IMG/VR virus record: IMGVR_UViG_3300026097_000876
Span: 62,001-126,000 of that record
Length of the DNA: 64,000 bases
Direction: 5' to 3' (one strand)
Positions 1 to 11,023 of this stretch are shown here, piece after piece (positions within the stretch are counted from its first letter, which is position 1; the number at the start of each line of letters is the position of its first letter). Under the pieces are notes generated by a model. The model was not told where the DNA came from. It did no database searches and saw only the letters and a program-made list of their open reading frames with translations. The position numbers and the translations under genes are program-made.

Positions 1-2
1 AT

Positions 3-368
3 ATGCAAAACTTTACACAAGCAGCACTTGCAGACGTGCAAGCACTAGTTAACACTTACGCTAATATTGCGGGCGATTACGAAGCAACGCTGTTATGCGG
101 CGTATGGCACTACATGTGCGACAGCGGCATATACACAGACGCATTTAGCGAAGCAGATGCGGAGTATGTAGAAGCGCACTACGACAACAATGTGCAATAC
201 TACAACGACGACGATTGCGGCTACACAGACGCATTTTATGCTGTAATATTTGACGACGATAAATTGCAATGCAATGCAGTGTTACAAGCACAAGATGCAA
301 TTGCAAACAAGCATAATTTGCATAACGAAGATGTTGCACGTATGTGTATGCAACTAGAAGCAAGTTAA
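3..368 (+). CDS. Early hypothetical protein, acidic, 121 aa
   Basis: ORF from ATG at 3; followed by an early promoter; D/E-rich; no Pro. Confidence 0.75.
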   Translation: MQNFTQAALADVQALVNTYANIAGDYEATLLCGVWHYMCDSGIYTDAFSEADAEYVEAHYDNNVQYYNDDDCGYTDAFYAVIFDDDKLQCNAVLQAQDAIANKHNLHNEDVARMCMQLEAS

Positions 369-381
369 TTGTAAAAAACAC

Positions 382-410
382 TTGACAGCAGCATGCTTTT
401 GTAGTATGCT
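382..410 (+). promoter_or_regulatory. Early sigma70-type promoter
   Basis: TTGACA(382-387)-17 bp-TATGCT(405-410); GAGGGC RBS at 438. Confidence 0.8.
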
Positions 411-448
411 GCTGCATATACACTAAAAAATTGCAAAGAGGGCAAACT

Positions 449-901
449 ATGCAATACAACAAGATTTTTACAAACTGCGCTGTAGTAAGCGACGAGAATT
501 TTGACTTGCTTACAGCAGAACAGCTAGAAGCATTTACACAAGCGGAACGTGCTTTTGTGCTTGTGTTTTTAGCAGACACACTTGCAAACTTGACACAGGT
601 TAACGCAGACTGTGCAGTAGAAAACGACAACTACTTTGTGCGACTAGCGGATGCGCAGGAGGTTATGCAAAATTTGCAAATGCTGTACGACACACTAGAC
701 GACAGCGACGACTGTACAAATATACAGTTTACGCTAGCGGATGCGGGTGCTGCGCTGTGTAGTTACGACACAGAATACAGGGAATGCATAGCGGAGCAAT
801 TTGAAGACGCATGCGACAACGCTGCTAAACTTGCAAAGCAAACTGGCAACACAAACGCAGACTACAGCACACTTGCTGTGCGTGTGCTGTGTAGTTATTA
901 A
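449..901 (+). CDS. Early hypothetical protein, acidic, 150 aa
   Basis: ATG 449 after GAGGGC RBS (ORF track starts at TTG 431). Confidence 0.8.
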   Translation: MQYNKIFTNCAVVSDENFDLLTAEQLEAFTQAERAFVLVFLADTLANLTQVNADCAVENDNYFVRLADAQEVMQNLQMLYDTLDDSDDCTNIQFTLADAGAALCSYDTEYRECIAEQFEDACDNAAKLAKQTGNTNADYSTLAVRVLCSY

Positions 902-908
902 AAAGGGG

Positions 909-937
909 TTGACAAATGTGTTTATGTGTGCTACTAT
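909..937 (+). promoter_or_regulatory. Early sigma70-type promoter
   Basis: TTGACA-17-TACTAT; GAGGGC at 963. Confidence 0.8.
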
Positions 938-973
938 GTACACATAAACAATTAATTGCAAAGAGGGCACGCT

Positions 974-1177
974 ATGCAAAAACTAAACGAAAAAGCACTA
1001 CAGCAGTGGAACGCAACACGGCGTTTTATGCGTACACTAGACGAAGCGCAGCTGCATTTATTAATAGCGGCGCTAGACGGCGACAACAAGTTGCAAGTTA
1101 CGCAAACGCTAGTAGACAGCGCATATGACGCAATAGACGACAACATGCGCAAACAATATGCACAACACTTAAAATAG
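974..1177 (+). CDS. Early hypothetical protein, 67 aa
   Basis: ATG 974 after GAGGGC RBS. Confidence 0.8.
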   Translation: MQKLNEKALQQWNATRRFMRTLDEAQLHLLIAALDGDNKLQVTQTLVDSAYDAIDDNMRKQYAQHLK

Positions 1178-1180
1178 GGG

Positions 1181-1208
1181 TTGACAACTGTGCATATTGT
1201 GTTATACT
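1181..1208 (+). promoter_or_regulatory. Early promoter, -10 enclosed in an 11-bp inverted repeat
   Basis: TTGACA-16-TATACT with TGn extension; AACTGTGCATA(1186-1196)/TATGCACAGTT(1210-1220). Confidence 0.8.
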
Positions 1209-1241
1209 GTATGCACAGTTAAACAATATAGAGGGCACTAT

Positions 1242-1502
1242 ATGCAAAACACTACATACTATCCTGCCGCAGTCGCAAACGTTATAACACATTACGCACA
1301 AGCAATTGCACGTGCTAGTTATGACAGCGTAGTGGAAGCAGGCGACTACAGCATAACAGACAACTGTGCAAAAATACAGTACCTGTTGTCTGCTAGTGCG
1401 CAACACACCTCAGTTAAAAGTCTAGCAGTTGCCGCACTAAACAGCGCAGAGGATACAGTGCTGCGCGAATGCATGTACACACAATTAATGCAACACGCAT
1501 AA
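1242..1502 (+). CDS. Early hypothetical protein, 86 aa
   Basis: ATG 1242 after GAGGGC at 1231. Confidence 0.8.
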   Translation: MQNTTYYPAAVANVITHYAQAIARASYDSVVEAGDYSITDNCAKIQYLLSASAQHTSVKSLAVAALNSAEDTVLRECMYTQLMQHA

Positions 1503-1527
1503 TCTAAATAAGAATCATTTGCATTTA

Positions 1528-1558
1528 GGAGGCTGTAAATAATTACAGTCTTCTTTTT
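1528..1558 (+). terminator. Rho-independent terminator
   Basis: GGAGGCTGTAA-ataa-TTACAGTCTTC followed by a T run. Confidence 0.65.
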
Positions 1559-1570
1559 GCAAATTAGGGG

Positions 1571-1599
1571 TTGACAGGCGCAACCTTTGAGACTATACT
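1571..1599 (+). promoter_or_regulatory. Early sigma70-type promoter
   Basis: TTGACA-17-TATACT. Confidence 0.85.
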
Positions 1600-1635
1600 G
1601 TATAAACAATGAAGCATTAGAGAGAGGGTTTTGAA

Positions 1636-1920
1636 ATGCGAGTAGTTGAGCAATATGGCATGTTTACCGACGCTGGTGACAAGATGGTAGACCGCATAGT
1701 ACGTGCCGCACTCCAGTTGGGGCAAGAGCAGGCAGCTACCAATGCCGATGTGTGGGGATTTGCATATCGCGAGTTGGAGAAGCTCCAGACCAGCTTAGAG
1801 TTCTCGGAAGCAACAGACACCGTAGTACGTGAGGAAGTGTTCTCAGCACTGTGGGACAACCTTCCAGGATTTAATCTAACAGAAGAAGAGTACTGGTTCT
1901 TTGTTGAGGAGACAGCGTAA
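1636..1920 (+). CDS. Early hypothetical protein, 94 aa
   Basis: ORF after GAGGGT RBS. Confidence 0.8.
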   Translation: MRVVEQYGMFTDAGDKMVDRIVRAALQLGQEQAATNADVWGFAYRELEKLQTSLEFSEATDTVVREEVFSALWDNLPGFNLTEEEYWFFVEETA

Positions 1921-2081
1921 TGATGAATCAATATTTCGTTTACTATGATGGTCGGTTCCAAGGAACTGTGATGGCACTGAGTGAACAGAGTGCAAAGCAA
2001 AAGGCCGGACAGATGGTTGGTGTGAGTGCAAGTGCCTACACCGGCCGAGCAAGTCGTTTGGTAGAGGTAGTAAGACGATGA
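1920..2081 (+). CDS. Small hypothetical protein, 53 aa (MMNQYFVYYDGRFQG...)
   Basis: Read by hand; TAATG coupling upstream and ATGA coupling downstream; below the ORF-track cutoff. Confidence 0.65.
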   Translation: MMNQYFVYYDGRFQGTVMALSEQSAKQKAGQMVGVSASAYTGRASRLVEVVRR

Positions 2082-2320
2082 AATTTCTATTGCTGAGCAC
2101 AGCACTGATGGGAAGCGAACCCATGCTGTACCAAGACCGTGCGGTTTGCGTGGAGGCCGCAGAGAAGATCACTCTGAGCATGGGACTGGGCGAAGCGACT
2201 TGTATCCCCGCACCCATGAACCTGCAACAGGATCCACAAACAGTATTCGAGAACATGATCAAACTGATAAACAGCCAAAAGCAGTTGACAGACACTAAAC
2301 CAGGTGCGCCGATAAACTAG
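2078..2320 (+). CDS. Hypothetical protein, 80 aa, hydrophobic N-terminus and two Cys
   Basis: ORF track; ATGA overlap. Confidence 0.7.
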   Translation: MKFLLLSTALMGSEPMLYQDRAVCVEAAEKITLSMGLGEATCIPAPMNLQQDPQTVFENMIKLINSQKQLTDTKPGAPIN

Positions 2321-2323
2321 GGG

Positions 2324-2352
2324 TTGACAACTCGGGGTGCTCTTGCTATACT
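2324..2352 (+). promoter_or_regulatory. Early sigma70-type promoter
   Basis: TTGACA-17-TATACT. Confidence 0.85.
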
Positions 2353-2377
2353 AGTTTCACAGTTAGGAGGGCATCCA

Positions 2378-2542
2378 ATGGCTAAGAAAGTTCGTACACC
2401 GCAGAAACCTAAACCACGCAACTGGGTTGCCAAGTCCGTCCGTGACCTAGACGGTCCTTATCGTCCTCGAGCAGAACGGGATCGCACCAAGTTCACTCGC
2501 AAGAAAAAACATAAAAAAGAGGTTGACAACGATCCTAGTTGA
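2378..2542 (+). CDS. Small basic protein, 54 aa (MAKKVRTPQKPKPRNWVAK...)
   Basis: ATG 2378 after GGAGGGC; K/R-rich. Confidence 0.7.
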   Translation: MAKKVRTPQKPKPRNWVAKSVRDLDGPYRPRAERDRTKFTRKKKHKKEVDNDPS

Positions 2543-2551
2543 TCATATACT
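2523..2551 (+). promoter_or_regulatory. Early sigma70-type promoter overlapping the 3' end of the upstream ORF
   Basis: TTGACA-17-TATACT. Confidence 0.85.
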
Positions 2552-2582
2552 GTATATAACAGTTAGGGCATTGGAGGGCAAC

Positions 2583-2864
2583 ATGGCATACTACACTTAC
2601 ACCCAAGCACCGATAGGTTGTTTCGTAGAGCGGGACACCGGCAATTACTTTGAGTATAGCCTCAACGAAGAATGCTATGACAAGCCCATGGCCATCTTTC
2701 CACACAAGGTATGGGTAGGTGGAGAAGGCGTATGCGGCATGACTGGCTGGCGCTATGCAATCGTCAAGAAGACTGTGGCAACTGTTGTGGTAGACGAAGA
2801 CGAGTATGGTTATCCTGTGCTAGAGAAATGGAAGCTCAAGTCCAACAAGGAGTATGCGGTATGA
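2583..2864 (+). CDS. Early hypothetical protein, 93 aa
   Basis: ATG 2583 after GAGGGC. Confidence 0.8.
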   Translation: MAYYTYTQAPIGCFVERDTGNYFEYSLNEECYDKPMAIFPHKVWVGGEGVCGMTGWRYAIVKKTVATVVVDEDEYGYPVLEKWKLKSNKEYAV

Positions 2865-3049
2865 TTAGGATCTTCAACTCAGCTTACCCAGGCACAGACA
2901 CCAAACTGTCACTGGAAGAAGTCAACATTGTCACACAGCAGATTGACTGGATGGGCCGTCCTTTCATTATGTTTGAGCACAGTGACTATCCACTGGGCGC
3001 TGTGGTCGCAACCTTTGATGGAGAATATTGGCAGGCTGATCTAGATTAG
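2861..3049 (+). CDS. Hypothetical protein, 62 aa (MIRIFNSAYPG...)
   Basis: ATGA overlap with upstream stop; AGGAG RBS. Confidence 0.7.
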   Translation: MIRIFNSAYPGTDTKLSLEEVNIVTQQIDWMGRPFIMFEHSDYPLGAVVATFDGEYWQADLD

Positions 3050-3052
3050 GGG

Positions 3053-3081
3053 TTGACAAACCCAGCCGTTGAGCATATACT
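3053..3081 (+). promoter_or_regulatory. Early sigma70-type promoter
   Basis: TTGACA-17-TATACT. Confidence 0.85.
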
Positions 3082-3113
3082 GTATAGACACTGAAGCATT
3101 AGAGGGCAATCAA

Positions 3114-3434
3114 ATGCAAGCACAAATCGAAAAACTCATCCAAGACATCAAAGACAACTACGCTGAGTTCTGTGATCGTGAAGACATGGTCACTGCGTTC
3201 AACGAAGGTGTTACCGCCAAAGCTGGTAAGAAGTATGTGAAGATCCTCAAGAAGCTGGGATCGCAGACAATGGTGTGGGGTTTCATCGTAAATGTAGATG
3301 ACGATAAGAAGTTCCGCAAGGGCGACTTGTTGATGGCGGCGGGCTTCAATGCTCCTGCTCGTAACAAGCCGCGTGGTAACATCCTAGACGGTGGATATAC
3401 TATTCGTTGGACCGGTCCGGGGTACTTGAAATGA
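3114..3434 (+). CDS. Conserved phage hypothetical protein, 106 aa
   Basis: ATG 3114 after GAGGGC; GKKYVKI...APARNKPRGN...WTGPGYL pattern resembles a family I recall from T4-like phages. Confidence 0.75.
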   Translation: MQAQIEKLIQDIKDNYAEFCDREDMVTAFNEGVTAKAGKKYVKILKKLGSQTMVWGFIVNVDDDKKFRKGDLLMAAGFNAPARNKPRGNILDGGYTIRWTGPGYLK

Positions 3435-3538
3435 GAGAGTACAACGAGAAAGCGGTAGAGCGAGAGATCCGAAAGGATCCTCGCATCAAGGGCAAAGAAG
3501 CCAAACTCATTAAGGCACTGTTAAAGGGACGCAAGTAA
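3431..3538 (+). CDS. Small basic protein, 35 aa (MREYNEKAVER...)
   Basis: Read by hand; translationally coupled at both ends. Confidence 0.6.
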   Translation: MREYNEKAVEREIRKDPRIKGKEAKLIKALLKGRK

Positions 3539-3750
3539 TGGCTTTGGAAACTCTACAGGAGACCACTGAAGGTCTCCACCCTCATACCTATCTCGTGGAC
3601 AACACCAAAGGCAAGATGTATGCCTATAGACGAGAGGACGGAGAGATCAATGTATTCTCCAAGCCGCTGACGTTTGGAAAAAAATACAGAAAGTTTAATA
3701 AAGTGGTTGACAACGAACTCGAACGAGCATATACTATATATAACAGTTAG
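3538..3750 (+). CDS. Hypothetical protein, 70 aa
   Basis: ORF track; TAATG coupling. Confidence 0.75.
   Translation: MALETLQETTEGLHPHTYLVDNTKGKMYAYRREDGEINVFSKPLTFGKKYRKFNKVVDNELERAYTIYNS
3707..3735 (+). promoter_or_regulatory. Early sigma70-type promoter inside the upstream ORF
   Basis: TTGACA-17-TATACT. Confidence 0.85.
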
Positions 3751-3768
3751 GGCAAAGAGGGAATACAC

Positions 3769-3942
3769 ATGCAAGGCACAATCCGAATCGTAGCAGGCTT
3801 CTTCCTTATGTTAGGCGGCGTAGGCGCCATCGAAAGCAACACAGAAGTCACAGTTCCGCTAGATAGCTTGGCAATTGCTGTTGCGGGTTTGGTTATTATG
3901 GCAAGCGGTGCATTGGCCGCGGCTCGACAGGAGACAGTGTAA
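3769..3942 (+). CDS. Small membrane protein, 57 aa, two predicted TM helices
   Basis: Read by hand; ATG after GAGGGA; MQGTIRIVAGFFLMLGGVG...LAIAVAGLVIMASGALAAA. Confidence 0.7.
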   Translation: MQGTIRIVAGFFLMLGGVGAIESNTEVTVPLDSLAIAVAGLVIMASGALAAARQETV

Positions 3943-4142
3943 TGGAAACGGTAACAGTCTACAAAGACTCATATGATCAACTTTGTGAAGAGCGGAATGC
4001 TGCCAGCTATAACTTGGCCACGCTCAAAGGTATGCTGATCGGCCTAAGCGGCTACTGTGATGAGCATCCGCAGATTGTATCGGACCGCATTAAAGAAATT
4101 GCACAAAAACTTGAATTAGAGGTTGACATCTCTAAACTTTGA
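3942..4142 (+). CDS. Hypothetical protein, 66 aa
   Basis: ORF track; TAATG coupling. Confidence 0.75.
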   Translation: METVTVYKDSYDQLCEERNAASYNLATLKGMLIGLSGYCDEHPQIVSDRIKEIAQKLELEVDISKL

Positions 4143-4151
4143 TCGTATACT
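4123..4151 (+). promoter_or_regulatory. Early sigma70-type promoter
   Basis: TTGACA-17-TATACT. Confidence 0.85.
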
Positions 4152-4187
4152 GTATAGACAATGTTAAACAACGCGAGGGCAAACGCA

Positions 4188-4346
4188 ATGGATTACAGAG
4201 ATTACGCAATTGAAATGGTTGAAGACGGCATAGTAGATCCTATGATGATGCTTACGGCCGCTCTCAAATATATGAGCCAAGACGACGTTCGTGATATGCT
4301 TACAGCGAACGAACTGGACTCACGCTTCGAAGAGGAGGACGCATAA
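4188..4346 (+). CDS. Hypothetical protein, 52 aa
   Basis: ATG 4188 after GAGGGC. Confidence 0.7.
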   Translation: MDYRDYAIEMVEDGIVDPMMMLTAALKYMSQDDVRDMLTANELDSRFEEEDA

Positions 4347-4831
4347 TGCCTAACTGGTGCATGAACAATGCAGACATCACAGCCACAACAGAAGAGCAGA
4401 AGGCACTGTTGTATCGTGTAAGCACAGCAGAAGCCGCAGACGGATTCTTCGAACTGCTTCGTCCACTGGGAGAGTGGGACTACAATAACTCAGTGGACAA
4501 CTGGGGAACCAAGTGGGATGTAGAACCTCTGAGTATGGAATACGATGGCACAACACTCACAGCATCGTTCGACTCAGCCTGGGCACCACCAGTGGCACTG
4601 TATGAGTATTTGAAAGAACAGGGCTTCGAAGTATCAGCCAACTATTACGAACCCGGCATGGACTTCGCAGGCGAGTGGACGGATGGTGATGACTTCGTGT
4701 TAGAGGATGTAGCAGAACTTGCTCGTGGTGATGAGAGTGCTCTGAGCAAACGCGAATACGACATCCTGGAGCAATGGGGCATCTTTGAAGACGTTGCCAT
4801 GTGGGATGAAGAACTTCAGGAAATAGATTAA
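4346..4831 (+). CDS. DUF1281/YubB-like ferredoxin-fold protein
   Basis: MPNWCxN, WGTKWD, FDSAWAPP, YYEPGMDFAG motifs. Confidence 0.7.
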   Translation: MPNWCMNNADITATTEEQKALLYRVSTAEAADGFFELLRPLGEWDYNNSVDNWGTKWDVEPLSMEYDGTTLTASFDSAWAPPVALYEYLKEQGFEVSANYYEPGMDFAGEWTDGDDFVLEDVAELARGDESALSKREYDILEQWGIFEDVAMWDEELQEID

Positions 4832-4841
4832 TTAAAGTTAT

Positions 4842-4918
4842 CTCCGCGTAGCTCAGCTGGATAGAGCATGGGATTTCTAATCCCAGGGTCGCAGGTTCGA
4901 ATCCTGCCGCGGAGGCCA
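4842..4918 (+). tRNA. trnR: tRNA-Arg(UCU)
   Basis: Cloverleaf; anticodon loop TTTCTAA; GGTTCGAATCC T-arm; encoded CCA. Confidence 0.95.
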
Positions 4919-4924
4919 AATTTA

Positions 4925-5011
4925 GCTCCCTTGGTGGAATAGGTAGACACAAGAGACTTAAAATCTCTCGCTGGAAACAGTGTCCCGGTTCGAGTCCGGG
5001 AGGGAGCACCA
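4925..5011 (+). tRNA. trnL: tRNA-Leu(UAA)
   Basis: Long variable arm; loop CTTAAAA; encoded CCA. Confidence 0.95.
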
Positions 5012-5017
5012 AGTTAA

Positions 5018-5093
5018 GGACCTATAGCTCAGTGGTTAGAGCACCCCACTCATAATGGGTTGGTCCCTGGTTCGAGTCCAGGTGGGTCCACCA
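5018..5093 (+). tRNA. trnI: tRNA with CAU anticodon, most likely Ile2 (lysidine, reads AUA)
   Basis: Loop CTCATAA; body closely resembles bacterial tRNA-Ile2 (AGCTCAGTGGTTAGAGCA...CTCATAAT...TTGGTC.CTGGTTC); CCA end. Confidence 0.85.
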
Positions 5094-5111
5094 ATACAAA
5101 GGAGAAGACGA

Positions 5112-5381
5112 ATGTCAATTTACGAAGTGTCACCGGAATACAAGAAGCTATGCCACGTCGGTGCTGATATGCAGGACTGGTCCGAGAACTATGGTAAGCT
5201 CCACGGACTGAAAGATGTCACGGACGATGGTTTACGCATGCTCAATCAAATGAGCCAAGTAGGCTGTATGCTCACACGTTTGGGCACTACCTTTGGCACA
5301 ACTGAGAAGAGCTTCACAGATGAAGACAAGCAATTAATTTCAAAATTTATGCAGAATAAGGTTGACATCGAGCGCAAGTGA
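5112..5381 (+). CDS. Hypothetical protein, 89 aa
   Basis: ATG 5112 after AGGAG. Confidence 0.75.
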   Translation: MSIYEVSPEYKKLCHVGADMQDWSENYGKLHGLKDVTDDGLRMLNQMSQVGCMLTRLGTTFGTTEKSFTDEDKQLISKFMQNKVDIERK

Positions 5382-5390
5382 CCATATACT
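5362..5390 (+). promoter_or_regulatory. Early sigma70-type promoter
   Basis: TTGACA-17-TATACT. Confidence 0.85.
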
Positions 5391-5422
5391 ATATATAACA
5401 GTTAGGGCAAAGGGCAATCCAA

Positions 5423-5818
5423 ATGACAACACTTCTTCAGCACATCGAATCTCTTAACGCAAAAGCAGACCTTATGATGGAGCAGGAGCCAGGCCTGTGG
5501 ATGAGCAAGTACACAGACGACATGAGCTTCTGGGCTGACATGGGAGTCTACACTGTAGAGGACTTCAAGCGCAGCCAACTGATCGATGGCATTAGTGATG
5601 CGTCTAAGGATCTCAACGGATGTCGTTTGCGCCTCAACTGGGATGTGATGAGCATGGAAGAACTAGAAGATACTTACGACAGCATCTGTTCTGCACTGAA
5701 CCGCCAGTTCGAAGCTGAGCAGGAAGCAGAGGCTTATGAAGCAGAACTGCGCAAAGGGTTGTCAGACAACTGTGAGCCACTACCCTACGAAGAATACGCA
5801 GACTTGGAGGCAGTGTAA
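5423..5818 (+). CDS. Acidic hypothetical protein, 131 aa
   Basis: ORF track; AAGGGC RBS. Confidence 0.8.
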   Translation: MTTLLQHIESLNAKADLMMEQEPGLWMSKYTDDMSFWADMGVYTVEDFKRSQLIDGISDASKDLNGCRLRLNWDVMSMEELEDTYDSICSALNRQFEAEQEAEAYEAELRKGLSDNCEPLPYEEYADLEAV

Positions 5819-5994
5819 TGATCAACTTGATAATTGGATTTGTGTTAGGGGCACTGTACATGAACGGAACCCTTGCTGAGTTTGGAGACATCATGTTGAA
5901 CCTTGTGAACAGCACAGCAGAGCAAGTGTCAGCGGCTACTGAGCCAACCACACTAGAAAAATTAGAACAGAAAATGGTTGACCTAACTGACTAA
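5818..5994 (+). CDS. Small protein, 58 aa, N-terminal TM or signal segment
   Basis: Read by hand; MINLIIGFVLGALYM...; TAATG coupling. Confidence 0.65.
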   Translation: MINLIIGFVLGALYMNGTLAEFGDIMLNLVNSTAEQVSAATEPTTLEKLEQKMVDLTD

Positions 5995-6006
5995 AGGTCG
6001 TATACT
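5978..6006 (+). promoter_or_regulatory. Early sigma70-type promoter
   Basis: TTGACC-17-TATACT; TGAGGGCA RBS at 6026. Confidence 0.8.
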
Positions 6007-6036
6007 TAAACAATAGCAAAACACATGAGGGCAACC

Positions 6037-7047
6037 ATGCAGAACATTAGAATTTTAGAAGGCACTTACAAGATCCGCGGCAAAGAAGTTGAACTGGCCG
6101 GAATGGTATTTCCACTGGTAGAAGAGTTCAAGGTTGGTGCGGGCGGCGGCTACGTAACGGTGAATGGTGCAACGGTCGCAGGCTTTCCGGACCGCAACAT
6201 CAAGATCAAATGCGAGAGCGCACAGTCATACGAGATTGTAGACAGCTCCGTAGCCGTCGTCCAGCGTGAGGAGACCGATGAAGAGACTATCGATCGCCTG
6301 CGTGAACGTTTCGACATGTTGGAGGAGATGACCAAAGCCTGCAAGAAAGGCGATGTACGTGCAATGATTGTGAGTGGCCCTCCAGGTGTTGGTAAGAGTC
6401 ACGGTGTAGAAAAAGTACTAGGCAAGCACGATCTTCTAGCAGAGATTGCCAACGACGAGAAGCTGAAGAAGTACGAAGTGGTCAAGGGCGCGATGAGTGC
6501 GATTGGTTTGTATGTAAAGCTATACAAGATGGCAGACAAAGACAACGTGGTAGTGTTCGATGACTGTGACAGTATCTTTTCAGATGAACTCAGCCTTAAT
6601 ATTTTAAAAGCGGCACTGGACACAAAGAAGACACGTCGCATCTGTTGGAACACTGACAGCTTCAAGCTGCGCAACGAAGGTGTGCCAGATAGCTTTGAGT
6701 TCAAAGGTAGTGCGATCTTTATCACCAACATCAAGTTCGACAACGTCAAGAGCAAGAAGATGCGTGATCACCTAGAAGCACTTGAAAGCCGTTGCCACTA
6801 TGTTGATCTAACAATCGACACAGAGCGAGAGAAGATGTTGCGCATCAAGCAGATTGTTACCGACGGTATGCTGGACGAATACAGATTCGACGAAGAAGTA
6901 CATCAAGAGATTGTAGACTTTGTTGATATTAATAAGAAGCGACTGCGTGAGCTGTCATTAAGAACAGTGTTGAAAGTCGCCGACTTAGCCAAAGCATTTC
7001 CCAGCAATTGGGAAGCGATGGCAGAGAACACAGTGATGAAACGTTAA
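6037..7047 (+). CDS. AAA+ P-loop ATPase
   Basis: Walker A GPPGVGKS; Walker B VVVFDDCD; sensor-1 FITN; SRC motif. Confidence 0.85.
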   Translation: MQNIRILEGTYKIRGKEVELAGMVFPLVEEFKVGAGGGYVTVNGATVAGFPDRNIKIKCESAQSYEIVDSSVAVVQREETDEETIDRLRERFDMLEEMTKACKKGDVRAMIVSGPPGVGKSHGVEKVLGKHDLLAEIANDEKLKKYEVVKGAMSAIGLYVKLYKMADKDNVVVFDDCDSIFSDELSLNILKAALDTKKTRRICWNTDSFKLRNEGVPDSFEFKGSAIFITNIKFDNVKSKKMRDHLEALESRCHYVDLTIDTEREKMLRIKQIVTDGMLDEYRFDEEVHQEIVDFVDINKKRLRELSLRTVLKVADLAKAFPSNWEAMAENTVMKR

Positions 7048-7156
7048 GCCCTCAACGACATCACTGGGTAGAAGTAGAGCATCCCTCATATGCCCTCACG
7101 CTCTACTTCGAAACTAGCCTCACTTGGACCGCCCTCATCCAAGTGGGGTTTTTTTT
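7048..7156 (+). ncRNA. Candidate 3'UTR-derived sRNA with CCCUCA loops complementary to the early-gene RBS
   Basis: 10-bp stem GAAGTAGAGC/GCTCTACTTC with loop ATCCCTCATATGCCCTCAC; terminator loop CCGCCCTCA; extra GCCCTCA at 7048. Confidence 0.55.
7118..7156 (+). terminator. Rho-independent terminator
   Basis: 11-bp stem CCTCACTTGGA/TCCAAGTGGGG followed by T8. Confidence 0.9.
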
Positions 7157-7158
7157 GG

Positions 7159-7187
7159 TTGACATCTCACCCCAACGACCTTATACT
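7159..7187 (+). promoter_or_regulatory. Early sigma70-type promoter
   Basis: TTGACA-17-TATACT; GAGGGC at 7206. Confidence 0.85.
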
Positions 7188-7217
7188 ATAAACAGTTAAA
7201 GCAAAGAGGGCAATCTT

Positions 7218-7502
7218 ATGTCGCAACGTCAAGCATTCGCAAATAACCACAACACACAACTCGCTCGCATAGTCAGCAAGCTCATCCGCAAGCACATTCC
7301 CACAAACCCACAGCTCACCACAGCATTCAATCAATTCAATCACAGCATGTATCTGCATCGTGTGTTGTACAAATATCATGTCAGCGCACTCAAGCACACA
7401 ATCCACAAGCCGCGCATGCAAGCCTATTTCGTTCGCATCCTGCGCAACAATCCACAAATCCTAGTCAACACCGCCCATACACCCACAGCATATCAAAAGT
7501 AA
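7218..7502 (+). CDS. Basic hypothetical protein, 94 aa, lacking D, E, G and W
   Basis: Promoter and GAGGGC RBS directly upstream. Confidence 0.7.
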   Translation: MSQRQAFANNHNTQLARIVSKLIRKHIPTNPQLTTAFNQFNHSMYLHRVLYKYHVSALKHTIHKPRMQAYFVRILRNNPQILVNTAHTPTAYQK

Positions 7503-7510
7503 AAAAGAGG

Positions 7511-7539
7511 TTGACAGCGTACGGCTTAGGTCGTATACT
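7511..7539 (+). promoter_or_regulatory. Early sigma70-type promoter
   Basis: TTGACA-17-TATACT; TGAGGGCA RBS. Confidence 0.85.
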
Positions 7540-7574
7540 TAATATAACAGTTAGCACGCCATGAGGGCAACAAG

Positions 7575-7736
7575 ATGAAGACTTCAGAAGAAATACAGGC
7601 TCAGATCCTCGAGTTGGAAGAGGAGATTGAAAACTACGAGTTTGGATCTTACCCGTATGATGTAGTGAATGCCGAGCTTCAATACCTGTATGCCTTCAAC
7701 TCAAATTCGGTTGACAGCAAACGGGGCACACCATGA
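7575..7736 (+). CDS. Small acidic protein, 53 aa (MKTSEEIQAQ...)
   Basis: Read by hand; RBS upstream. Confidence 0.65.
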   Translation: MKTSEEIQAQILELEEEIENYEFGSYPYDVVNAELQYLYAFNSNSVDSKRGTP

Positions 7737-7894
7737 ACGACTTTCAAGCACTACTAGAAGCACTAATTCCTTTCGTACAGTATGGATTCATCGCGGGCGT
7801 GACCATTGCTGTGATTGTGGCCGCGGCAAAGATCGGATTTAAGATTGCACCATACGTATTATTATTTGCTGCGATTGTTTACTTTTTCGGTTGA
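7733..7894 (+). CDS. Small membrane protein, 53 aa, two TM helices
   Basis: Read by hand; ATGA overlap; stop TGA lies inside the next -35 box. Confidence 0.7.
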   Translation: MNDFQALLEALIPFVQYGFIAGVTIAVIVAAAKIGFKIAPYVLLFAAIVYFFG

Positions 7895-7919
7895 CAACAC
7901 AGCACATTGATCATATACT
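7891..7919 (+). promoter_or_regulatory. Early sigma70-type promoter
   Basis: TTGACA-17-TATACT; GAGGGA RBS. Confidence 0.85.
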
Positions 7920-7952
7920 GCATATAACAGTTAGGGCAAAGAGGGAATACAC

Positions 7953-8126
7953 ATGCATATCAACGACATCTACGCATTGCGTTCAGAGTTATCAAAGCTG
8001 TTAGCAAACGAAACTCCTGATCGACCAACCGTCCGTGCATTGATGAGTGCGGCCTGCGACGAGATCACAGAGTTCGAAGCACACCTAGAACTGATGGCAG
8101 AACGTGAGGAGGCAGCACAATGTTGA
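7953..8126 (+). CDS. Small hypothetical protein, 57 aa (MHINDIYALR...)
   Basis: Read by hand; RBS upstream. Confidence 0.65.
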   Translation: MHINDIYALRSELSKLLANETPDRPTVRALMSAACDEITEFEAHLELMAEREEAAQC

Positions 8127-8332
8127 AACTGTTACAACGACTGGTAGCACTACAAGAGAACCGTGACTATCGTACTAATGAGATCATATGGAACTATGTG
8201 GATGCTGATGCGTATCACTATGCGAGAGAACTGTACAACACAGACGATGAGTTCTATGATGCATTCAACGCAGCCGCTGACGAAATAGATCGTGAAATAG
8301 CACAGAAAATGGTTGACAACACAGCACACTGA
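8120..8332 (+). CDS. Hypothetical protein, 70 aa
   Basis: ORF track; GAGGAGG RBS. Confidence 0.75.
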   Translation: MLKLLQRLVALQENRDYRTNEIIWNYVDADAYHYARELYNTDDEFYDAFNAAADEIDREIAQKMVDNTAH

Positions 8333-8341
8333 CCATATACT
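8313..8341 (+). promoter_or_regulatory. Early sigma70-type promoter
   Basis: TTGACA-17-TATACT; near-identical to the promoter at 7891. Confidence 0.85.
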
Positions 8342-8376
8342 GTATACACAATGAAGCAATAGATAGAGGGCATACT

Positions 8377-8724
8377 ATGCAATTGGAACAACACAACATT
8401 GAACTAGCACACACTAACGCACTAGCAGCAGCTGAGGCAGCAAGCCAAGCGTTCGTGGACAAACACTTTGGTGGTAGAGACGCAGGCGCTTGTGGCTTTG
8501 CGCACGTAGCAGTGTTTGGTGTACGTGCTAACAGCAAGCTGGGCAAAGCACTAGAAGCAGTAACAGGAGCGCGGAAGTGTTATGATGGAGCATTCCAAAT
8601 CCGCAACACATGGTACCGTGGACAGAGTGTAGACGCAGCTGACGCAGGTGCGCAAGCATACAAGGACACATTCAAAGCACTAACAGGACTTGACAAAGTC
8701 TACGCAGCAAGTAGACTAGACTAA
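8377..8724 (+). CDS. Conserved phage hypothetical protein, 115 aa
   Basis: GAGGGC RBS; DAGACGFAHV...QSVDA..AGAQAY...SRLD pattern. Confidence 0.8.
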   Translation: MQLEQHNIELAHTNALAAAEAASQAFVDKHFGGRDAGACGFAHVAVFGVRANSKLGKALEAVTGARKCYDGAFQIRNTWYRGQSVDAADAGAQAYKDTFKALTGLDKVYAASRLD

Positions 8725-8765
8725 CAACAAGAGTGTAGGCAGCAGGCTCGGATCTGCATGCAAGA

Positions 8766-8794
8766 AAGGGACGGTGGCAACACTGTCCTTTTTT
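8766..8794 (+). terminator. Rho-independent terminator ending the + strand early region
   Basis: AAGGGACGGTG-GCAA-CACTGTCCTT followed by a T run. Confidence 0.9.
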
Positions 8795-8818
8795 CTTATG
8801 CGCACAAAACACACAGCC

Positions 8819-8848
8819 AAAAAAAAGCACAGCGTATGTGCTGTGCTT
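8819..8848 (-). terminator. Rho-independent terminator, minus strand
   Basis: GCACAGC/GCTGTGC stem with A8 on the + strand. Confidence 0.8.
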
Positions 8849-8864
8849 GTGTGTTAACTAAACA

Positions 8865-9047
8865 CTACACATCAAAGTGCAGTGTTACTGATTCAGGAAT
8901 ATAGTCTGCGTCAGTTACTTCGCCCATTTGCTCAAACAGTTCCGCACTGTGCAGTTCAAGTTCTTTTGCTGAGTAGTGCGAAAACGCTGTTACTTGCAAG
9001 TGTTGCGGTAGTGCTTGCAGCTGTGCTACTAGTTCGCTTACTAACAT
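8865..9047 (-). CDS. Early hypothetical protein, 60 aa (MLVSELVAQLQALPQH...)
   Basis: ATG 9047 after GGAG RBS and its own promoter. Confidence 0.75.
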   Translation of the reverse strand: MLVSELVAQLQALPQHLQVTAFSHYSAKELELHSAELFEQMGEVTDADYIPESVTLHFDV

Positions 9048-9079
9048 TATGTATTGCTCCGTTTTGTTACTGTTTATAT

Positions 9080-9107
9080 ATAATAACACAACACAACAAA
9101 AAGTCAA
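9080..9107 (-). promoter_or_regulatory. Early sigma70-type promoter, minus strand
   Basis: TTGACT-16-TATTAT with TG extension; AAACAGT leader like the + strand cassettes. Confidence 0.7.
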
Positions 9108-9250
9108 CACATTTGGCTGTGAAAAAAATTTCAATCACATCAAGGGGTTACCAAAACAATTTAAAAAATTTCTGAGGGGCGGGGCGTAGTAAGCTATTGT
9201 TTTTAAAGCTGTTTTTTAGTAGTAGTGGTACAAAATCACCAACCAACTTC

Positions 9251-9366
9251 TGTAAGTACTTCTCTATAATTTTTCGCACGGGATCTCGCACACTGTGTAG
9301 AACCCATTTCGGAAATGTGTAAGTACTTCCCTAAATTTTTTTGCGCACTATTTTTTTACTGTGTAG
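9251..9366. repeat. Imperfect ~50-bp direct repeat pair with an intervening palindrome
   Basis: TGTAAGTACTTC.CTA.A.TTTTT..CGCAC...ACTGTGTAG at 9251-9300 and 9318-9366; CATTTC-G-GAAATG at 9305-9317. Confidence 0.75.
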
Positions 9367-9474
9367 GGAGTCTTTTCGGAGGAAGGCGACTCTTGAACCC
9401 TTTTCTCTACTGTAAGCTAGCGAAGCGAACACACACGTGAGTGCAGGGGTCGCTTGCTGAAAGCAAAGACTCCC
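9366..9474. ncRNA. Candidate structured RNA or DNA element
   Basis: GGGAGTCTTT/AAAGACTCCC closing stem; nested GCGACTC/GGGTCGC stem; TTGCT-GAA-AGCAA hairpin. Confidence 0.45.
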
Positions 9475-9555
9475 AACGAACGTGTATGTACACAGTACAT
9501 TTATATGTGTCTAAACAAGAACCTCTTAGCTGTGTGCTAGGATAGCAAGTGTGGA

Positions 9556-9684
9556 TTACTCGCTGATGCTCCAATCGAACGGTGCGTCATACATGTGTAC
9601 ACCTTGACAGTCTTTGCGATGCTGTGTGTATTCGTCATAGTCATCAAACATGCTTCCACATGTACTACAGTGTACCCAACCCAT
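9556..9684 (-). CDS. Small Zn-finger-like protein, 42 aa (MGWVHCSTCGSMFDDYDEYTQHRKDC...)
   Basis: Read by hand; CxxC-x12-HxxxC spacing. Confidence 0.55.
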   Translation of the reverse strand: MGWVHCSTCGSMFDDYDEYTQHRKDCQGVHMYDAPFDWSISE

Positions 9685-9715
9685 CTTTTGATAGAACTCT
9701 TGTTTGTCTTTTGGT

Positions 9716-9985
9716 TTATCCGTCATGTTGCTCTAGCTTAGGACTGTTACTAAAGAACTTTCTACTGTCAAGCGGATCACAGCCAGCTGCTTGTAGAGTG
9801 CGTGTGCCTTTTACTGTAAGCCATATCTCACCTGAGCGATTGGTTTCTAGATATCCCAGTGTAAAGTAAGGCTGAAGAGCTCGCATAGCATCTTTGTCTT
9901 TCTTGTCCCAGTGCCCGCTCTTGGCCTTGACAATCTTATCGTAGTCTTCTAGTGTTAGTTGAGGATTGTAATACTTTTCGTACAT
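9716..9985 (-). CDS. Hypothetical protein, 89 aa, possible winged helix
   Basis: AAGGAG RBS; GYLETNRSGEIWLTVKG resembles a wHTH wing. Confidence 0.7.
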   Translation of the reverse strand: MYEKYYNPQLTLEDYDKIVKAKSGHWDKKDKDAMRALQPYFTLGYLETNRSGEIWLTVKGTRTLQAAGCDPLDSRKFFSNSPKLEQHDG

Positions 9986-10219
9986 GCTGTCTCCTTTTGA
10001 ATATTTAGCGTTTGGTGCTGCGTTAGCTTGTAAAATTCTGCGCTAACGCTTCGCGCTTTTTAGCGTAAACCGCTCTGCGGCTGCGGGCCATAAATGGCTC
10101 TTAATTGCATGGGTTTTCGGTTTTGCTACCCAATATACCATTTAGTGGTTAAACGGCAATTTAAGGCTCATTTATGCTGGTAAAACCTTTATTTACGGTG
10201 TCTGTCGCACGGGTGATTT

Positions 10220-11023
10220 TTAGTCCTGGGTGTTGTTTTTTGGCCAATGCTGTGGGGGAATGGTATTGCCCGGCTGCATGGCCATTTGTACCAGTTGTTC
10301 ACACAGTCCCGGATGGGTCAGCTTGTGCTCCAGTTTGAGGAATCCAGTTTGAAAACGCTCGTGCTCTAGATCCAGTAGTCCAGCGCCTGGCTTGGTGAAT
10401 CTTTCCAACAGTAGGTCTGCAAACACCCGGTGATTGTGGGCGGTCATGTGATTGGCTCTGGTGTCAATGCTTTGACCGTACCACTGTTCAATGTCCCTAC
10501 AATCTGCAAACTCTCTGTCGCATATGCTCCAAGTCATGTTGCCCTTGCAGGGGTATAGGTCGGTCCAGTCTATGTTCATGGTAAACGCTGGAATAACCTG
10601 TAGGTTGATCTGTCGTTCAATACCTTTCACACGCAGGAAGTCAGTGATCATCTGTAGGCGAAGATCTGACAAGTCGTCTCTGTGCAGATGTTCATAGTAA
10701 CCGATCACAGCATCATATTTTTCTCTAGAGGCTTCTTTGACGTCTGCTGCATCCGCCGTGTTCAAAATGCTTACTAGGTTGCTGAGATGCGGTTCATCCT
10801 CAAAGAACCATTGCCTTGCGGGTTCAGTAAGAAATACTATCACACAGTCACCAGGCTCATGCGCATCGTCTCTAAATGTTTTGAGAATCCACTCGTTGCT
10901 GGTTCCTGCACAGGCCTGTATGTAACAGTGCGATGTTTTCAACCTGGGTGCCAACAGTCTCTGCCATCCCCAATCCACTTTCCAGTCTGTGGCAAAACTG
11001 TCTCCGTAGATCCACAGCTTCAT
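10220..11023 (-). CDS. SGNH/GDSL-like hydrolase
   Basis: N-terminal IYGDSF; GTSN block; C-terminal NH. Confidence 0.6.
   Translation of the reverse strand: MKLWIYGDSFATDWKVDWGWQRLLAPRLKTSHCYIQACAGTSNEWILKTFRDDAHEPGDCVIVFLTEPARQWFFEDEPHLSNLVSILNTADAADVKEASREKYDAVIGYYEHLHRDDLSDLRLQMITDFLRVKGIERQINLQVIPAFTMNIDWTDLYPCKGNMTWSICDREFADCRDIEQWYGQSIDTRANHMTAHNHRVFADLLLERFTKPGAGLLDLEHERFQTGFLKLEHKLTHPGLCEQLVQMAMQPGNTIPPQHWPKNNTQD

Follow-up and report, generated by a model that had tools for sequence, protein, structure and literature searches.

Why does a giant uncultivated phage begin about sixteen small, presumably early, gene units with near-identical promoter, leader and ribosome-site cassettes, and what could such uniformity achieve? 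We analysed a window of 64,000 nucleotides from the 262-kb genome of this phage, a jumbo myovirus distantly related to PA5oct. The original prediction described an array of 15 plus-strand promoters and one minus-strand promoter, likened it to the promoter-repeat modules of some T4-like phages that allow recombinational shuffling of accessory genes, and suggested that it could also titrate host RNA polymerase. As set out below, the array itself was confirmed, while its reading as a recombination module was only partly supported. In addition, the same region was found to encode a conserved folded RNA whose loops are the exact complement of the cassette ribosome site, pointing to a so far undescribed way of controlling early phage genes.

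The reality of the array was first assessed by pattern searches. The exact pattern TTGACA-N15-18-TATACT matched 12 times on the + strand between 1181 and 8341, while about 0.04 matches are expected in the whole window, which holds only one other match. GGTTGAC occurred 15 times in 907-8317, against 4.8 expected in the whole window. A consensus scan then recovered all 16 predicted positions, including the variants at 382 (-10 TATGCT), 909 (TACTAT) and 5978 (-35 TTGACC) and the minus-strand site at 9107 (TTGACT-16-TATTAT). The features of the region are as follows.

1..1262 (+), YC-free block of g01 (3-368), g02 (449-901), g03 (974-1177) and their cassettes, with no TC or CC dinucleotide on the sense strand; the depletion fades through g04, up to about 1500.
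382..448 (+), cassette 1 (TTGACA-17-TATGCT, leader, GAGGGCA RBS), heading g02.
909..973 (+), cassette 2 (TTGACA-17-TACTAT), heading g03.
1181..1241 (+), cassette 3 (TTGACA-16-TATACT), heading g04.
1571..1635 (+), cassette 4 (class B leader), heading g05-g06-g07; a weak AT-rich hairpin plus T-run lies at 1533-1558.
2324..2377 (+), cassette 5, heading g08.
2523..2582 (+), cassette 6 (class A leader), heading g09-g10; the stop codon of g08 lies in the promoter spacer.
3053..3113 (+), cassette 7 (class B), heading g11-g12-g13.
3707..3768 (+), cassette 8 (class A, GAGGGAA RBS), heading g14-g15; g13 reads through the -35 and the -10 and stops in the leader.
4123..4187 (+), cassette 9 (class B-like), heading g16-g17.
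4842..5093 (+), three tRNA genes inside the array (Arg-TCT, Leu-TAA, Met-CAT), followed by g18 (5112-5381).
5362..5422 (+), cassette 10 (class A), heading g19-g20; the -35 and spacer encode the C-terminus of g18 (..KVDIERK*).
5978..6036 (+), cassette 11 (TTGACC-17-TATACT), heading g21.
6037..7047 (+), g21, a 336-aa AAA-type ATPase of the T4 NrdC.10 family (phrog_1250), the most conserved gene of the array.
7048..7156 (+), structured RNA in the g21 3'UTR with four (G/U)CCCUC motifs: a 5' single-stranded copy at 7048, a hairpin at 7070-7109 with two copies in its loop, and a terminator hairpin at 7120-7145 with one copy in its loop plus a T-run at 7149-7156; a candidate anti-RBS RNA.
7159..7217 (+), cassette 12, abutting the terminator T-run (the one clear terminator-plus-promoter composite), heading g22.
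7511..7574 (+), cassette 13 (class A core), heading g23-g24.
7891..7952 (+), cassette 14 (class A; its last 36 nt are identical to cassette 8), heading g25-g26.
8313..8376 (+), cassette 15 (class B; promoter nearly identical to cassette 14), heading g27 (8377-8724; YC observed/expected 0.28).
8769..8848 (no strand assigned), end of the array, with a + strand terminator hairpin (8769-8788 plus T-run) and a - strand terminator (8848-8825).
8865..9107 (-), minus-strand cassette (TTGACT-16-TATTAT at 9107-9080, leader, GGAGCA RBS) with its roughly 61-aa gene (9050-8865).

The finer claims of the original prediction were examined in the same manner. The 36-nt repeat 3738-3773 = 7922-7957 is exact, and the promoters at 7891 and 8313, described as near-identical, differ at 2 of 31 bases. 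The leaders fall into two classes plus variants, class A (...TATATAACAGTTAGGGCAAAGAGGG) in 7 copies and class B (...GTATAgACAaTGAAGCAtTAGAGGGCA) in 4 copies. As claimed, the first gene after a promoter uses GAGGG(C/A), while internal genes use GGAG/GAGG-type sites, often inside the 3' end of the preceding gene, and across relatives 65% of promoter-proximal genes have rAGGGC against 29% of the others (Fisher p = 2e-11). Some corrections were, however, required. The array starts just left of the window, since g01 has its own cassette at genome position 61,929, and a weaker extra site lies at 8690. The GA.C(A/G) element described just before the -10 is real, but in part it is the TGA stop codon of the upstream ORF. 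The designation "early" is inferred from the sigma-70 consensus.

We then asked whether the cassette is peculiar to this genome, and found it to be a family trait. The 22-mer of the -10 plus leader occurs exactly in 60 IMG/VR loci, all of which have GGTTGAC 17 nt upstream, and at least six more similar cassettes lie elsewhere in the genome itself. PA5oct, the nearest cultured relative (TerL 55% identical), is transcribed by host RNA polymerase from TTGAC/TATAATA promoters (PMC7318152). Homologues of the array genes occur in relatives in scrambled order, with 291 distinct upstream/downstream pairs among 479 cassettes. A fixed cassette order across relatives had been named beforehand as evidence against shuffling, but gene order was not fixed; for example, the g21 family is preceded through a cassette by 22 different upstream gene families. 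In four relatives the same g18 end and promoter is followed by four other genes. Gene families nevertheless keep their junction type, as g21 is preceded by a cassette in 21 of 21 cases, g16 in 13 of 14, and g17 by a tight junction in 8 of 10. Upstream ORFs end at stop codons inside the cassette.

Two further findings, both absent from the original prediction, bear on why the leader and the RBS are conserved. The first is the 3'UTR of g21, which is a covarying multi-hairpin RNA with GCCCUC, the reverse complement of the cassette RBS GAGGGC, in its loops. In 35 distinct UTRs, 85% of motif bases were unpaired against 46% overall. Of 86 motifs, 57 lay in hairpin loops, on 39 different stems. The terminal hairpin gave a covariation score of 0.684, against 0.24 in shuffles (0 of 500 reached it) and at most 0.165 when slid, and its closing pair is a U-G wobble in 17 of 22 sequences, which fixes the strand. 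There is one copy per contig, always just after g21, and no Rfam match was found. In clade A the top UTR 6-mer is GCCCTC (34 of 35 UTRs) and the top RBS 6-mer is GAGGGC (149 of 239 leaders). In contrast, in a second clade, clade B, the RBS is AGGAGCUA and the loops are UAGCUCCU, the top UTR 6-mers being TAGCTC, AGCTCC and GCTCCT (24-26 of 44) and the top RBS 6-mers AGGAGC, GGAGCT and GAGCTA. The cross motifs are absent. Within the window, the one UCCCUC loop motif matches the two GAGGGA sites, and duplex energies favour promoter-proximal over internal start regions (mean z -1.6 against +0.3, p = 0.018). However, the complementary core is only 6-8 nt, in clade B it overlaps the ordinary SD/anti-SD pair, and only two independent motif switches support the covariation. 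A third clade (contigs L101-L140) has no such RNA after g21, with no matching loops found in the DNA examined, and PA5oct lacks the element. The RNA could also act only in cis on g21, or could bind a protein. While the complementarity suggests an RNA that pairs with the early leaders, this pairing is inferred from sequence.

The second finding is the lack of YC dinucleotides. Genes g01-g03 contain no TC or CC on the sense strand (0 observed, 93 expected in total; 33, 42 and 19 expected for g01, g02 and g03) and encode no proline. Positions 1-1500 of the window have 10 YC against 138 expected, all at 1263-1433. This is the only such zone in the 262-kb genome, and equivalent zones occur in 24 of 203 related loci. 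Leaders across relatives are also depleted, with an observed/expected ratio of 0.20 and 267 of 349 containing no YC, while the 37 nt upstream of the -35 have a ratio of 0.96. Each cleft of the primary binding site of the termination factor Rho takes one YC dinucleotide (PMC5314796), and the depletion fits evasion of Rho, although it could have other causes.

Taken together, we favour, with moderate confidence, the view that this is the hyperplastic early-gene region of an uncultivated jumbo myovirus that relies on the host sigma-70 RNA polymerase. In this view each of about 16 short transcription units, of 1-3 small genes of unknown function, begins with the same compact cassette of GG + TTGACA, a 17-bp spacer, TATACT, a purine-rich leader free of YC dinucleotides and a special ribosome site (GAGGGCA), which also supplies stop codons for whichever gene lies upstream. 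Any gene module could therefore sit behind any other and still be expressed immediately after infection. Across the phage family the promoter stays with its downstream gene while neighbours change freely, and the cassette is thus the 5' end of a portable gene module, although it has not been shown to be the crossover site. The special RBS is probably the address of a post-transcriptional control, in which the GCCCUC loops of the g21 3'UTR can pair with the GAGGGC sites of the promoter-proximal genes, and this could damp or time their translation as that transcript accumulates. The lack of YC dinucleotides in the leaders and in the first three genes most likely keeps these RNAs from being bound by Rho. 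The sequence features, their conservation, the scrambled gene order, the covariation of the RNA and the RBS/loop complementarity in two clades are demonstrated by our analysis, whereas the early timing, the RNA-RNA pairing and the direction of its effect, and the link to Rho are inferences from sequence, no RNA run having been found to hold this sequence.

The strongest alternative, though a tentative one, is that of the original prediction, in which the repeated cassettes are substrates of homologous recombination that excises, inserts and swaps the genes between them, for example through mini-circles, and are conserved for that role. As mentioned above, gene order is scrambled and the g18 end plus promoter is followed by five different genes. 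Several shared segments between otherwise different contigs (numbered L022, L031 and so on) begin and end within 0-30 nt of cassettes, such as L022 10014-10421 / L031 70-476 and L076 9130-9467 / L082 3208-3545. In the one metagenome run that holds the sequence, assembly contigs break at the cassettes, and 94 of 210 contigs match only partly. There is also precedent in T4-type phages (PMC4122927, PMC2839356). In contrast, however, tight promoter-less junctions are rearranged as often, the follower being the same in 0.26 of tight junctions against 0.32 of cassette junctions, and the predecessor in 0.31 against 0.15 pooled and 0.34 against 0.25 per family. Indels between 99%-identical contigs did not fall in cassettes but lay 80-500 nt from any of them. 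The longest exact repeat in the window is 36 nt and most are under 25 nt, relatives are too diverged to map crossovers, and an upstream stem-loop is missing from 12-13 of the 15 cassettes. Purifying selection on expression signals alone explains the conservation.

It is less likely that the GCCCUC-loop RNA is a protein-binding or Rho-related element, such as a sponge or loading site for an RNA-binding protein or a C-rich rut-like element, with its complementarity to the RBS incidental or reflecting mimicry of the anti-SD. Repeated short motifs displayed in hairpin loops are typical of protein-sponging RNAs such as CsrB/RsmZ, the motif is rich in YC (21 YC in 109 nt), and the clade B motif, GCUCCU, is close to the 16S anti-SD. 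However, the loop motif changes together with the RBS motif between clades, including positions outside the SD core (GC-U-A pairing with U-A-GC), the YC content of the RNA is not above expectation (21 against 20.6), and the RNA ends in an intrinsic terminator, so that Rho is not needed there.

The invariant -10/leader core could also be envisaged as an operator, although this seems doubtful. Here the 15-bp near-palindrome ACTGT-ATATA-ACAGT, which spans the -10 and the start site, would bind a phage or host repressor that shuts the early promoters off together. The core is exact in 86 copies from the 60 loci, it overlaps the -10 and +1, where repressors usually act, and two leader classes could correspond to two regulators. 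However, class B and the variant cassettes lack the palindrome yet keep the same promoter, the spacing (CTGT-N5-ACAG) does not fit the gammaproteobacterial LexA box CTGT-N8-ACAG, and no candidate repressor was identified. The 22-mer was not found in host-like genome contexts, the only hits being 4 MAG contigs from four phyla, probably mis-binned phage. Finally, although sixteen near-consensus promoters lie within 9 kb, it is very unlikely that the array works mainly as a sink titrating host RNA polymerase away from host genes, a role that could only be inferred from promoter number, as every promoter heads a conserved, translatable gene with an RBS and a sink would not need conserved leaders or an RBS.

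Among known systems, the PeSL (promoter-early stem-loop) elements of the T4-type phages RB49/phi1, T4/PST and KVP40/nt-1 (PMC2839356, PMC4122927) are likewise repeated composites with a sigma-70-like -35/N17/-10, an SD and a start codon, which cluster between small ORFs of unknown function in hyperplastic regions where neighbouring gene content varies between relatives, and one copy here (7120-7217) is a true terminator-plus-promoter composite. However, most copies here have no upstream stem-loop, the upstream ORF instead running into the promoter, the best conserved part lies downstream of the promoter (the -10 plus a 16-nt leader plus a special RBS), breakpoints are not enriched at the cassettes, and the phage is not T4-like but belongs to another lineage, as a distant relative of Arenbergviridae/PA5oct. 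PA5oct depends on host RNA polymerase, has 32 conserved TTGAC/TATAATA promoters (PMC7318152), and has an NrdC.10-like AAA gene among small plus-strand genes next to a non-coding region. The region around that gene has, however, no GAGGGCA sites, no class A leader and no GCCCUC-loop RNA.

The phage antisense RNAs that mask ribosome sites, P1/P7 c4 RNA, P22 sar RNA and P4 CI RNA, are also small structured RNAs made from the same operon or region as their targets, with exposed loops or segments that pair with the translation start region of phage genes. Those RNAs each control one target (immunity or antirepressor genes) in temperate phages, whereas here one RNA carries 1-5 copies of a short seed that matches a ribosome site shared by a dozen or more early genes of a presumably virulent jumbo phage, and there is no sequence relationship. 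C-rich-loop sRNAs of the RsaE/RoxS type have several C-rich motifs in loops or single-stranded stretches that pair with G-rich ribosome sites of many mRNAs, and end in an intrinsic terminator. They are host-encoded Firmicute sRNAs, while the RNA described here is phage-encoded and 3'UTR-borne, and its target motif appears to have been built into the phage's own leaders. A similar logic is found in the control of T4 early mRNAs by the RegB endoribonuclease (reviewed in PMC3014915). RegB cuts GGAG in early ribosome sites, so that early genes share a ribosome-site feature that lets one factor switch them off together; RegB is a protein nuclease, whereas the candidate factor here is an RNA.

The contig that carries the window is a single linear IMG/VR virus record of 261,806 bp with 37.7% G+C and a CheckV completeness estimate of 73%. 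Outside the array, the window encodes a tail sheath, a T4-type large terminase, a gp15-like protein and helicases. The nearest cultured relatives are PA5oct-like Pseudomonas jumbo phages (Arenbergviridae), whose large terminase is 55% identical and a virion protein 30% identical, while no phage record was similar at the DNA level. The array is richer in G+C (44-48%) than the rest of the window (33-42%). Further features in and beside the window were as follows.

Window 4842-5093: tRNA-Arg(TCT), tRNA-Leu(TAA) and tRNA-Met(CAT), inside the early array; the same three anticodons are among the 12 tRNAs of PA5oct, and the tRNA-Leu is 87% identical to one in EBPR podovirus 3.
Window 9108-10220: about 1.1 kb without a convincing ORF, between the array and the long block of minus-strand genes, with G-rich and T-rich runs and a 27-nt direct repeat (9251-9277 / 9318-9344); in PA5oct the corresponding neighbourhood holds a transcribed 'lncRNA'.
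Window 60298-63284: two adjacent genes for tryptophan-halogenase-like flavoproteins (Pfam PF04820, E 1e-85 and 2e-94).
Genome 61,300-61,830 (locus L060, 3330-3900; window coordinates about -700 to -170), just left of the window: a minus-strand class A cassette (genome 61829) followed by no ORF, which reads into a non-coding stretch with three to four DnaA-box-like sites TT(A/G)TCCACA and repeated CATTTAACATAATA..GCGCAC units; a candidate replication origin activated or primed by early transcription.

The promoter array put forward in the original prediction was confirmed. The pattern TTGACA-N15-18-TATACT matched 12 times on the + strand between 1181 and 8341, against 0.04 expected, and GGTTGAC occurred 15 times in 907-8317. 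A consensus scan recovered every one of the 16 predicted promoters, as 12 exact TTGACA-N16/17-TATACT sites and four one-mismatch variants, and added only a weaker site at 8690. Direct-repeat analysis grouped the cassettes into a class A leader (2523, 3707, 5362, 7511, 7891 and relatives) and a class B leader (1571, 3053, 4123, 8313), and confirmed the exact 36-mer repeat and the near-identical pair 7891/8313. We read 27 + strand genes in the array (35-336 aa), for which no non-standard genetic code was used. Only g21, the conserved NrdC.10-like gene, has a family with many members, and searches of the array proteins against Pfam and PHROGs found no functions. The 15 + strand cassettes were all followed within 24-38 nt of the -10 by GAGGG(C/A) and ATG, while the 11 internal genes and g18 used GGAG/GAGG sites embedded in the end of the preceding gene, often with ATGA or TAATG overlaps. 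Eight of the 15 promoter-proximal genes (starting at 449, 974, 1242, 3114, 3769, 6037, 7953 and 8377) begin ATGCA(A/G/T), encoding Met-Gln or Met-His, so that cassette conservation runs into the first codons. The first gene, g01, has its own cassette just left of the window, and more copies lie elsewhere in the genome on the other strand, at genome positions 1120, 5650, 6558, 26791, 61829 and 250828.

The cassette is a family trait. The 22-mer formed by the -10 box and the class A leader core occurred exactly in 60 IMG/VR loci, 86 copies in all, and every copy had GGTTGAC(A/T) 17 nt upstream, most with (G/A)AGGGC or a GGAG-type site before an ATG. One 44-kb contig (loci L026, L060 and L061) is identical to the window. 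To assess whether the motif mimics a host promoter or could identify a host, the 22-mer was scanned in one genome from each of 185,579 prokaryotic species. It was found in only four contigs (L204-L207: PAND01000020.1, JBDNIA010000195.1, PBPT01000016.1 and CALVJI010000018.1), which are assigned to four different phyla and filed in MAGs of Flavobacteriales, Crocinitomicaceae, Neomarinimicrobiota (a 335-kb contig) and Bacilli. These are most simply jumbo-phage DNA binned by mistake with bacterial genomes, so that the motif does not appear to be a host promoter, and no host was identified. In the family, upstream ORFs most often stop at the TAG/TAA just before GGTTGAC, at the TGA inside TTGACA, or at a TGA in the spacer, and in the window six upstream proteins end with residues encoded by the -35 box (..V-D..). 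The cassette therefore terminates the preceding reading frame, starts transcription and starts translation within about 70 nt, although its transcriptional role is predicted from sequence, and the early timing is inferred from the sigma-70 consensus and from PA5oct.

We then examined whether the order of the genes is fixed among relatives, an outcome that had been named beforehand as one that would refute the shuffling idea. It is not fixed. Homologues of the array genes occurred in the relatives in many different orders, and among 479 cassettes with both neighbours identified there were 291 distinct upstream/downstream family pairs. The g21 family was preceded by 22 different families and the g18 family was followed by 9. 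However, when cassette junctions were compared with tight, promoter-less junctions (gap of 25 nt or less) as a control, the follower was the same in 0.32 of cassette pairs and in 0.26 of tight pairs, with per-family means of 0.27 and 0.37. Tight junctions have their own conserved boundary, in which the 3' end of the upstream gene carries the SD and start codon of whatever follows it. At window 2861 and 4346, and at homologous junctions in the related loci L018, L022, L029, L066, L085 and L086, the 3' ends of the g09 and g16 families encode a conserved SD plus an overlapping stop/start (..AAGGAGTATGCnnTATGA, ..GAGGAGGAnGCnTAATG), to which unrelated downstream genes are attached in different phages, a promoter-less counterpart of the cassette. 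Gene families do keep their type of 5' junction, with g21 preceded by a cassette in 21 of 21 cases, g16 in 13 of 14, and g17 by a tight junction in 8 of 10. The promoter thus behaves as part of the downstream gene module.

The original prediction also held that the cassettes resemble the promoter-repeat modules of some T4-like phages that allow recombinational shuffling, and this interpretation found only partial support. Some modules shared between otherwise different contigs were bounded by cassettes on both sides, whereas the indels between 99%-identical contigs were few and did not lie at cassettes, and no close relative of the window itself differs from it. Mapping of crossovers by position-specific identity, using cassette pairs that share only the upstream or only the downstream gene, was uninformative, as the relatives are too diverged (flank identity 0.30-0.39 against a background of 0.25-0.28). 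In the only public run found to hold the sequence, a DNA metagenome kept as contigs, contigs broke at the cassettes and many matched only up to a cassette. The joints seen there had short sides (20-22 nt) that cannot be told apart from co-occurring relatives, so that this fits mosaic relatives in the sample but is no evidence for or against excision circles. We conclude that the region is hyperplastic at single-gene resolution and that the cassettes make modules self-sufficient. Their role as preferred recombination sites is possible but not shown, and on the comparison with tight junctions gene shuffling in this lineage does not seem to depend on them.

The 109 nt between the stop codon of g21 and cassette 12 (window 7048-7156) contain four copies of (G/T)CCCTC, the reverse complement of the cassette RBS. 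The predicted fold consists of a single-stranded 5' copy, a 10-bp hairpin with two copies in its loop, and a terminator hairpin with one copy in its loop. Downstream of g21 homologues in 35 distinct relatives the same architecture recurred, with 1-5 hairpins; 85% of motif bases were unpaired, against 46% of all bases, and 57 of 86 motifs sat in hairpin loops carried on 39 different stem sequences. For the terminal hairpin, 22 sequences showed compensatory changes in 8 of 10 pairs and gave a covariation score of 0.684, against 0.24 in shuffles (0 of 500 reach it) and at most 0.165 for slid registers. The closing pair is a U-G wobble in 17 of 22 sequences which, together with the T-run, fixes the RNA to the + strand. 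A covariance model found one copy per contig, always 40-260 nt after g21, and one strong copy in the window's genome. A search of Rfam 15 with E up to 1 found in 1-10500 only the three tRNAs and two chance hits elsewhere, and no family matched the leaders or the 3'UTR RNA.

The loop motif and the RBS were then compared at the level of the family. In clade A (g21 at least 66% identical), the commonest 6-mer of the 3'UTRs was GCCCTC (34 of 35 UTRs, 63 copies), and the commonest 6-mer in the 17 nt before promoter-proximal start codons was GAGGGC (149 of 239 distinct leaders). In a second clade, with a diverged g21 homologue, the leaders use AGGAGC, GGAGCT and GAGCTA, while the 3'UTR hairpin loops carry GCTCCT, AGCTCC and TAGCTC (24-26 of 44 UTRs; motif 74% unpaired), again on unrelated stems. 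Each clade lacks the other clade's motifs (0 of 44 and 4 of 35). Within the window, the single UCCCUC loop motif matches the two GAGGGA sites of cassettes 8 and 14, and the two motifs in the hairpin-1 loop can pair with both GGGC blocks of the class A leader. Predicted duplexes were better for promoter-proximal than for internal start regions (mean z -1.6 against +0.3, p = 0.018), a separation that is only modest because intramolecular structure is ignored. In contrast, a more distant third clade (L101-L140, for example L102:9890-10000), with a 61%-identical g21, uses TTGACTTTTTG..TATAAT promoters and leaders with two or three repeats of TAAGGCAAA before the start codon (repeated AGGCAA) and no ordinary SD. 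It has no structured RNA after g21, and no convincing UUGCCU-loop hairpins were found in the DNA examined. No homologous RNA, leader or RBS was found in PA5oct.

The first 1.26 kb of the window (g01-g03 with cassettes 1 and 2 and the promoter of cassette 3) contains no TC or CC (YC) dinucleotide on the sense strand, with 0 against 93 expected in g01-g03, whose proteins contain no proline. Window 1-1500 has 10 against 138 expected, while the opposite strand is only mildly depleted (observed/expected 0.59). The genes g04 and g27 (8377-8724) are partly depleted (0.34 and 0.28). No other 400-nt window of the 262-kb genome falls below 0.25. Zones of this kind lie upstream of g21 in many relatives, and on its strand wherever that can be read, in 24 of 203 loci and up to 3.6 kb long (for example L066:5001-8600 and L086:401-3000). 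The leaders share the property, as 349 distinct leaders have an observed/expected of 0.20 and 267 have no YC at all, whereas the 37 nt upstream of the -35 box have 0.96. Each of the six clefts of Rho's primary binding site accommodates one YC dinucleotide (PMC5314796). RNAs without YC should therefore not load Rho, which would protect untranslated leaders and the very first transcripts. Rho evasion is the leading idea, but this link is an inference, as a YC-specific deaminase acting on the displaced strand, or a YC-specific RNase, would leave the same footprint.

The simplest reading of the 3'UTR element is an RNA that pairs with, and masks, the ribosome sites of the first gene of each early unit, with translationally coupled downstream genes following. 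The seed is short, only two independent switches are seen, and a purely cis effect on g21, or a protein partner, is not excluded. The promoters, leaders, variable gene order, covarying hairpin, loop/RBS complementarity in two clades and YC depletion are direct results of the sequence analysis, while the early timing, the pairing itself, any repression by it and the escape from Rho are inferred. More tentatively still, the early region of this phage family could be envisaged as organised around RNA-level devices that have not been described for phages. In this view, the promoter-proximal early genes would form a 'regulon' defined by a private extended ribosome site (GAGGGCA in one clade, AGGAGCUA in another), read by a multi-loop anti-RBS RNA cut from, or carried on, the 3'UTR of the conserved NrdC.10-like gene, giving a built-in timer or feedback for early protein synthesis. 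The leaders and first genes, written without any YC dinucleotide to the point of excluding proline from three proteins, would likewise give transcripts that offer no binding site to the host termination factor Rho. A LexA operator, on the other hand, was dismissed, as the core CTGT-N5-ACAG has the wrong spacing for the gammaproteobacterial SOS box.

Arrays of early promoters are familiar in large virulent phages, so the array alone is a modest addition, which extends PeSL-like cassettes to a large, uncultivated jumbo-phage lineage known mostly from metagenomes. The putative anti-RBS RNA and the YC-free design are the unexpected parts; they matter more, and both are directly testable. A phage RNA whose loops co-vary with the ribosome sites of a whole set of early genes would be a simple, portable way to co-regulate many unrelated genes after transcription; a literature search found no report of such a phage RNA among the papers searched. 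Genes and leaders written without YC dinucleotides would be a sequence-level way of escaping Rho, the host's main silencer of foreign transcription, and the signature is clear enough (zero YC in 1.2 kb) to be searched for in other viruses. Both features also give practical markers for recognising early regions in metagenomic phage contigs.

Compared with the PeSL elements of T4-type phages, the sigma-70-like -35 and -10 boxes about 17 nt apart, the SD and start codon of the downstream gene at the 3' end, and the hyperplastic setting among small ORFs of unknown function agree. The stem-loop directly upstream of the promoter, in contrast, is mostly absent. Only one clear terminator precedes a + strand cassette (7120-7156; hairpin 7120-7145 in the scan), with a second, weak one seen by eye (1533-1549, extending to about 1558), and in the 479 cassettes of the family most upstream ORFs end within 0-30 nt of the promoter boxes or inside them. 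For the 3'UTR RNA, the nearest known analogues are P1 c4, P22 sar, P4 CI and the C-rich-loop sRNAs of Firmicutes. With trans-acting antisense RNAs of the P1 c4 type, which mask ribosome sites, it has in common a stable structure, here supported by covariation, with exposed segments complementary to the start regions of its putative targets.
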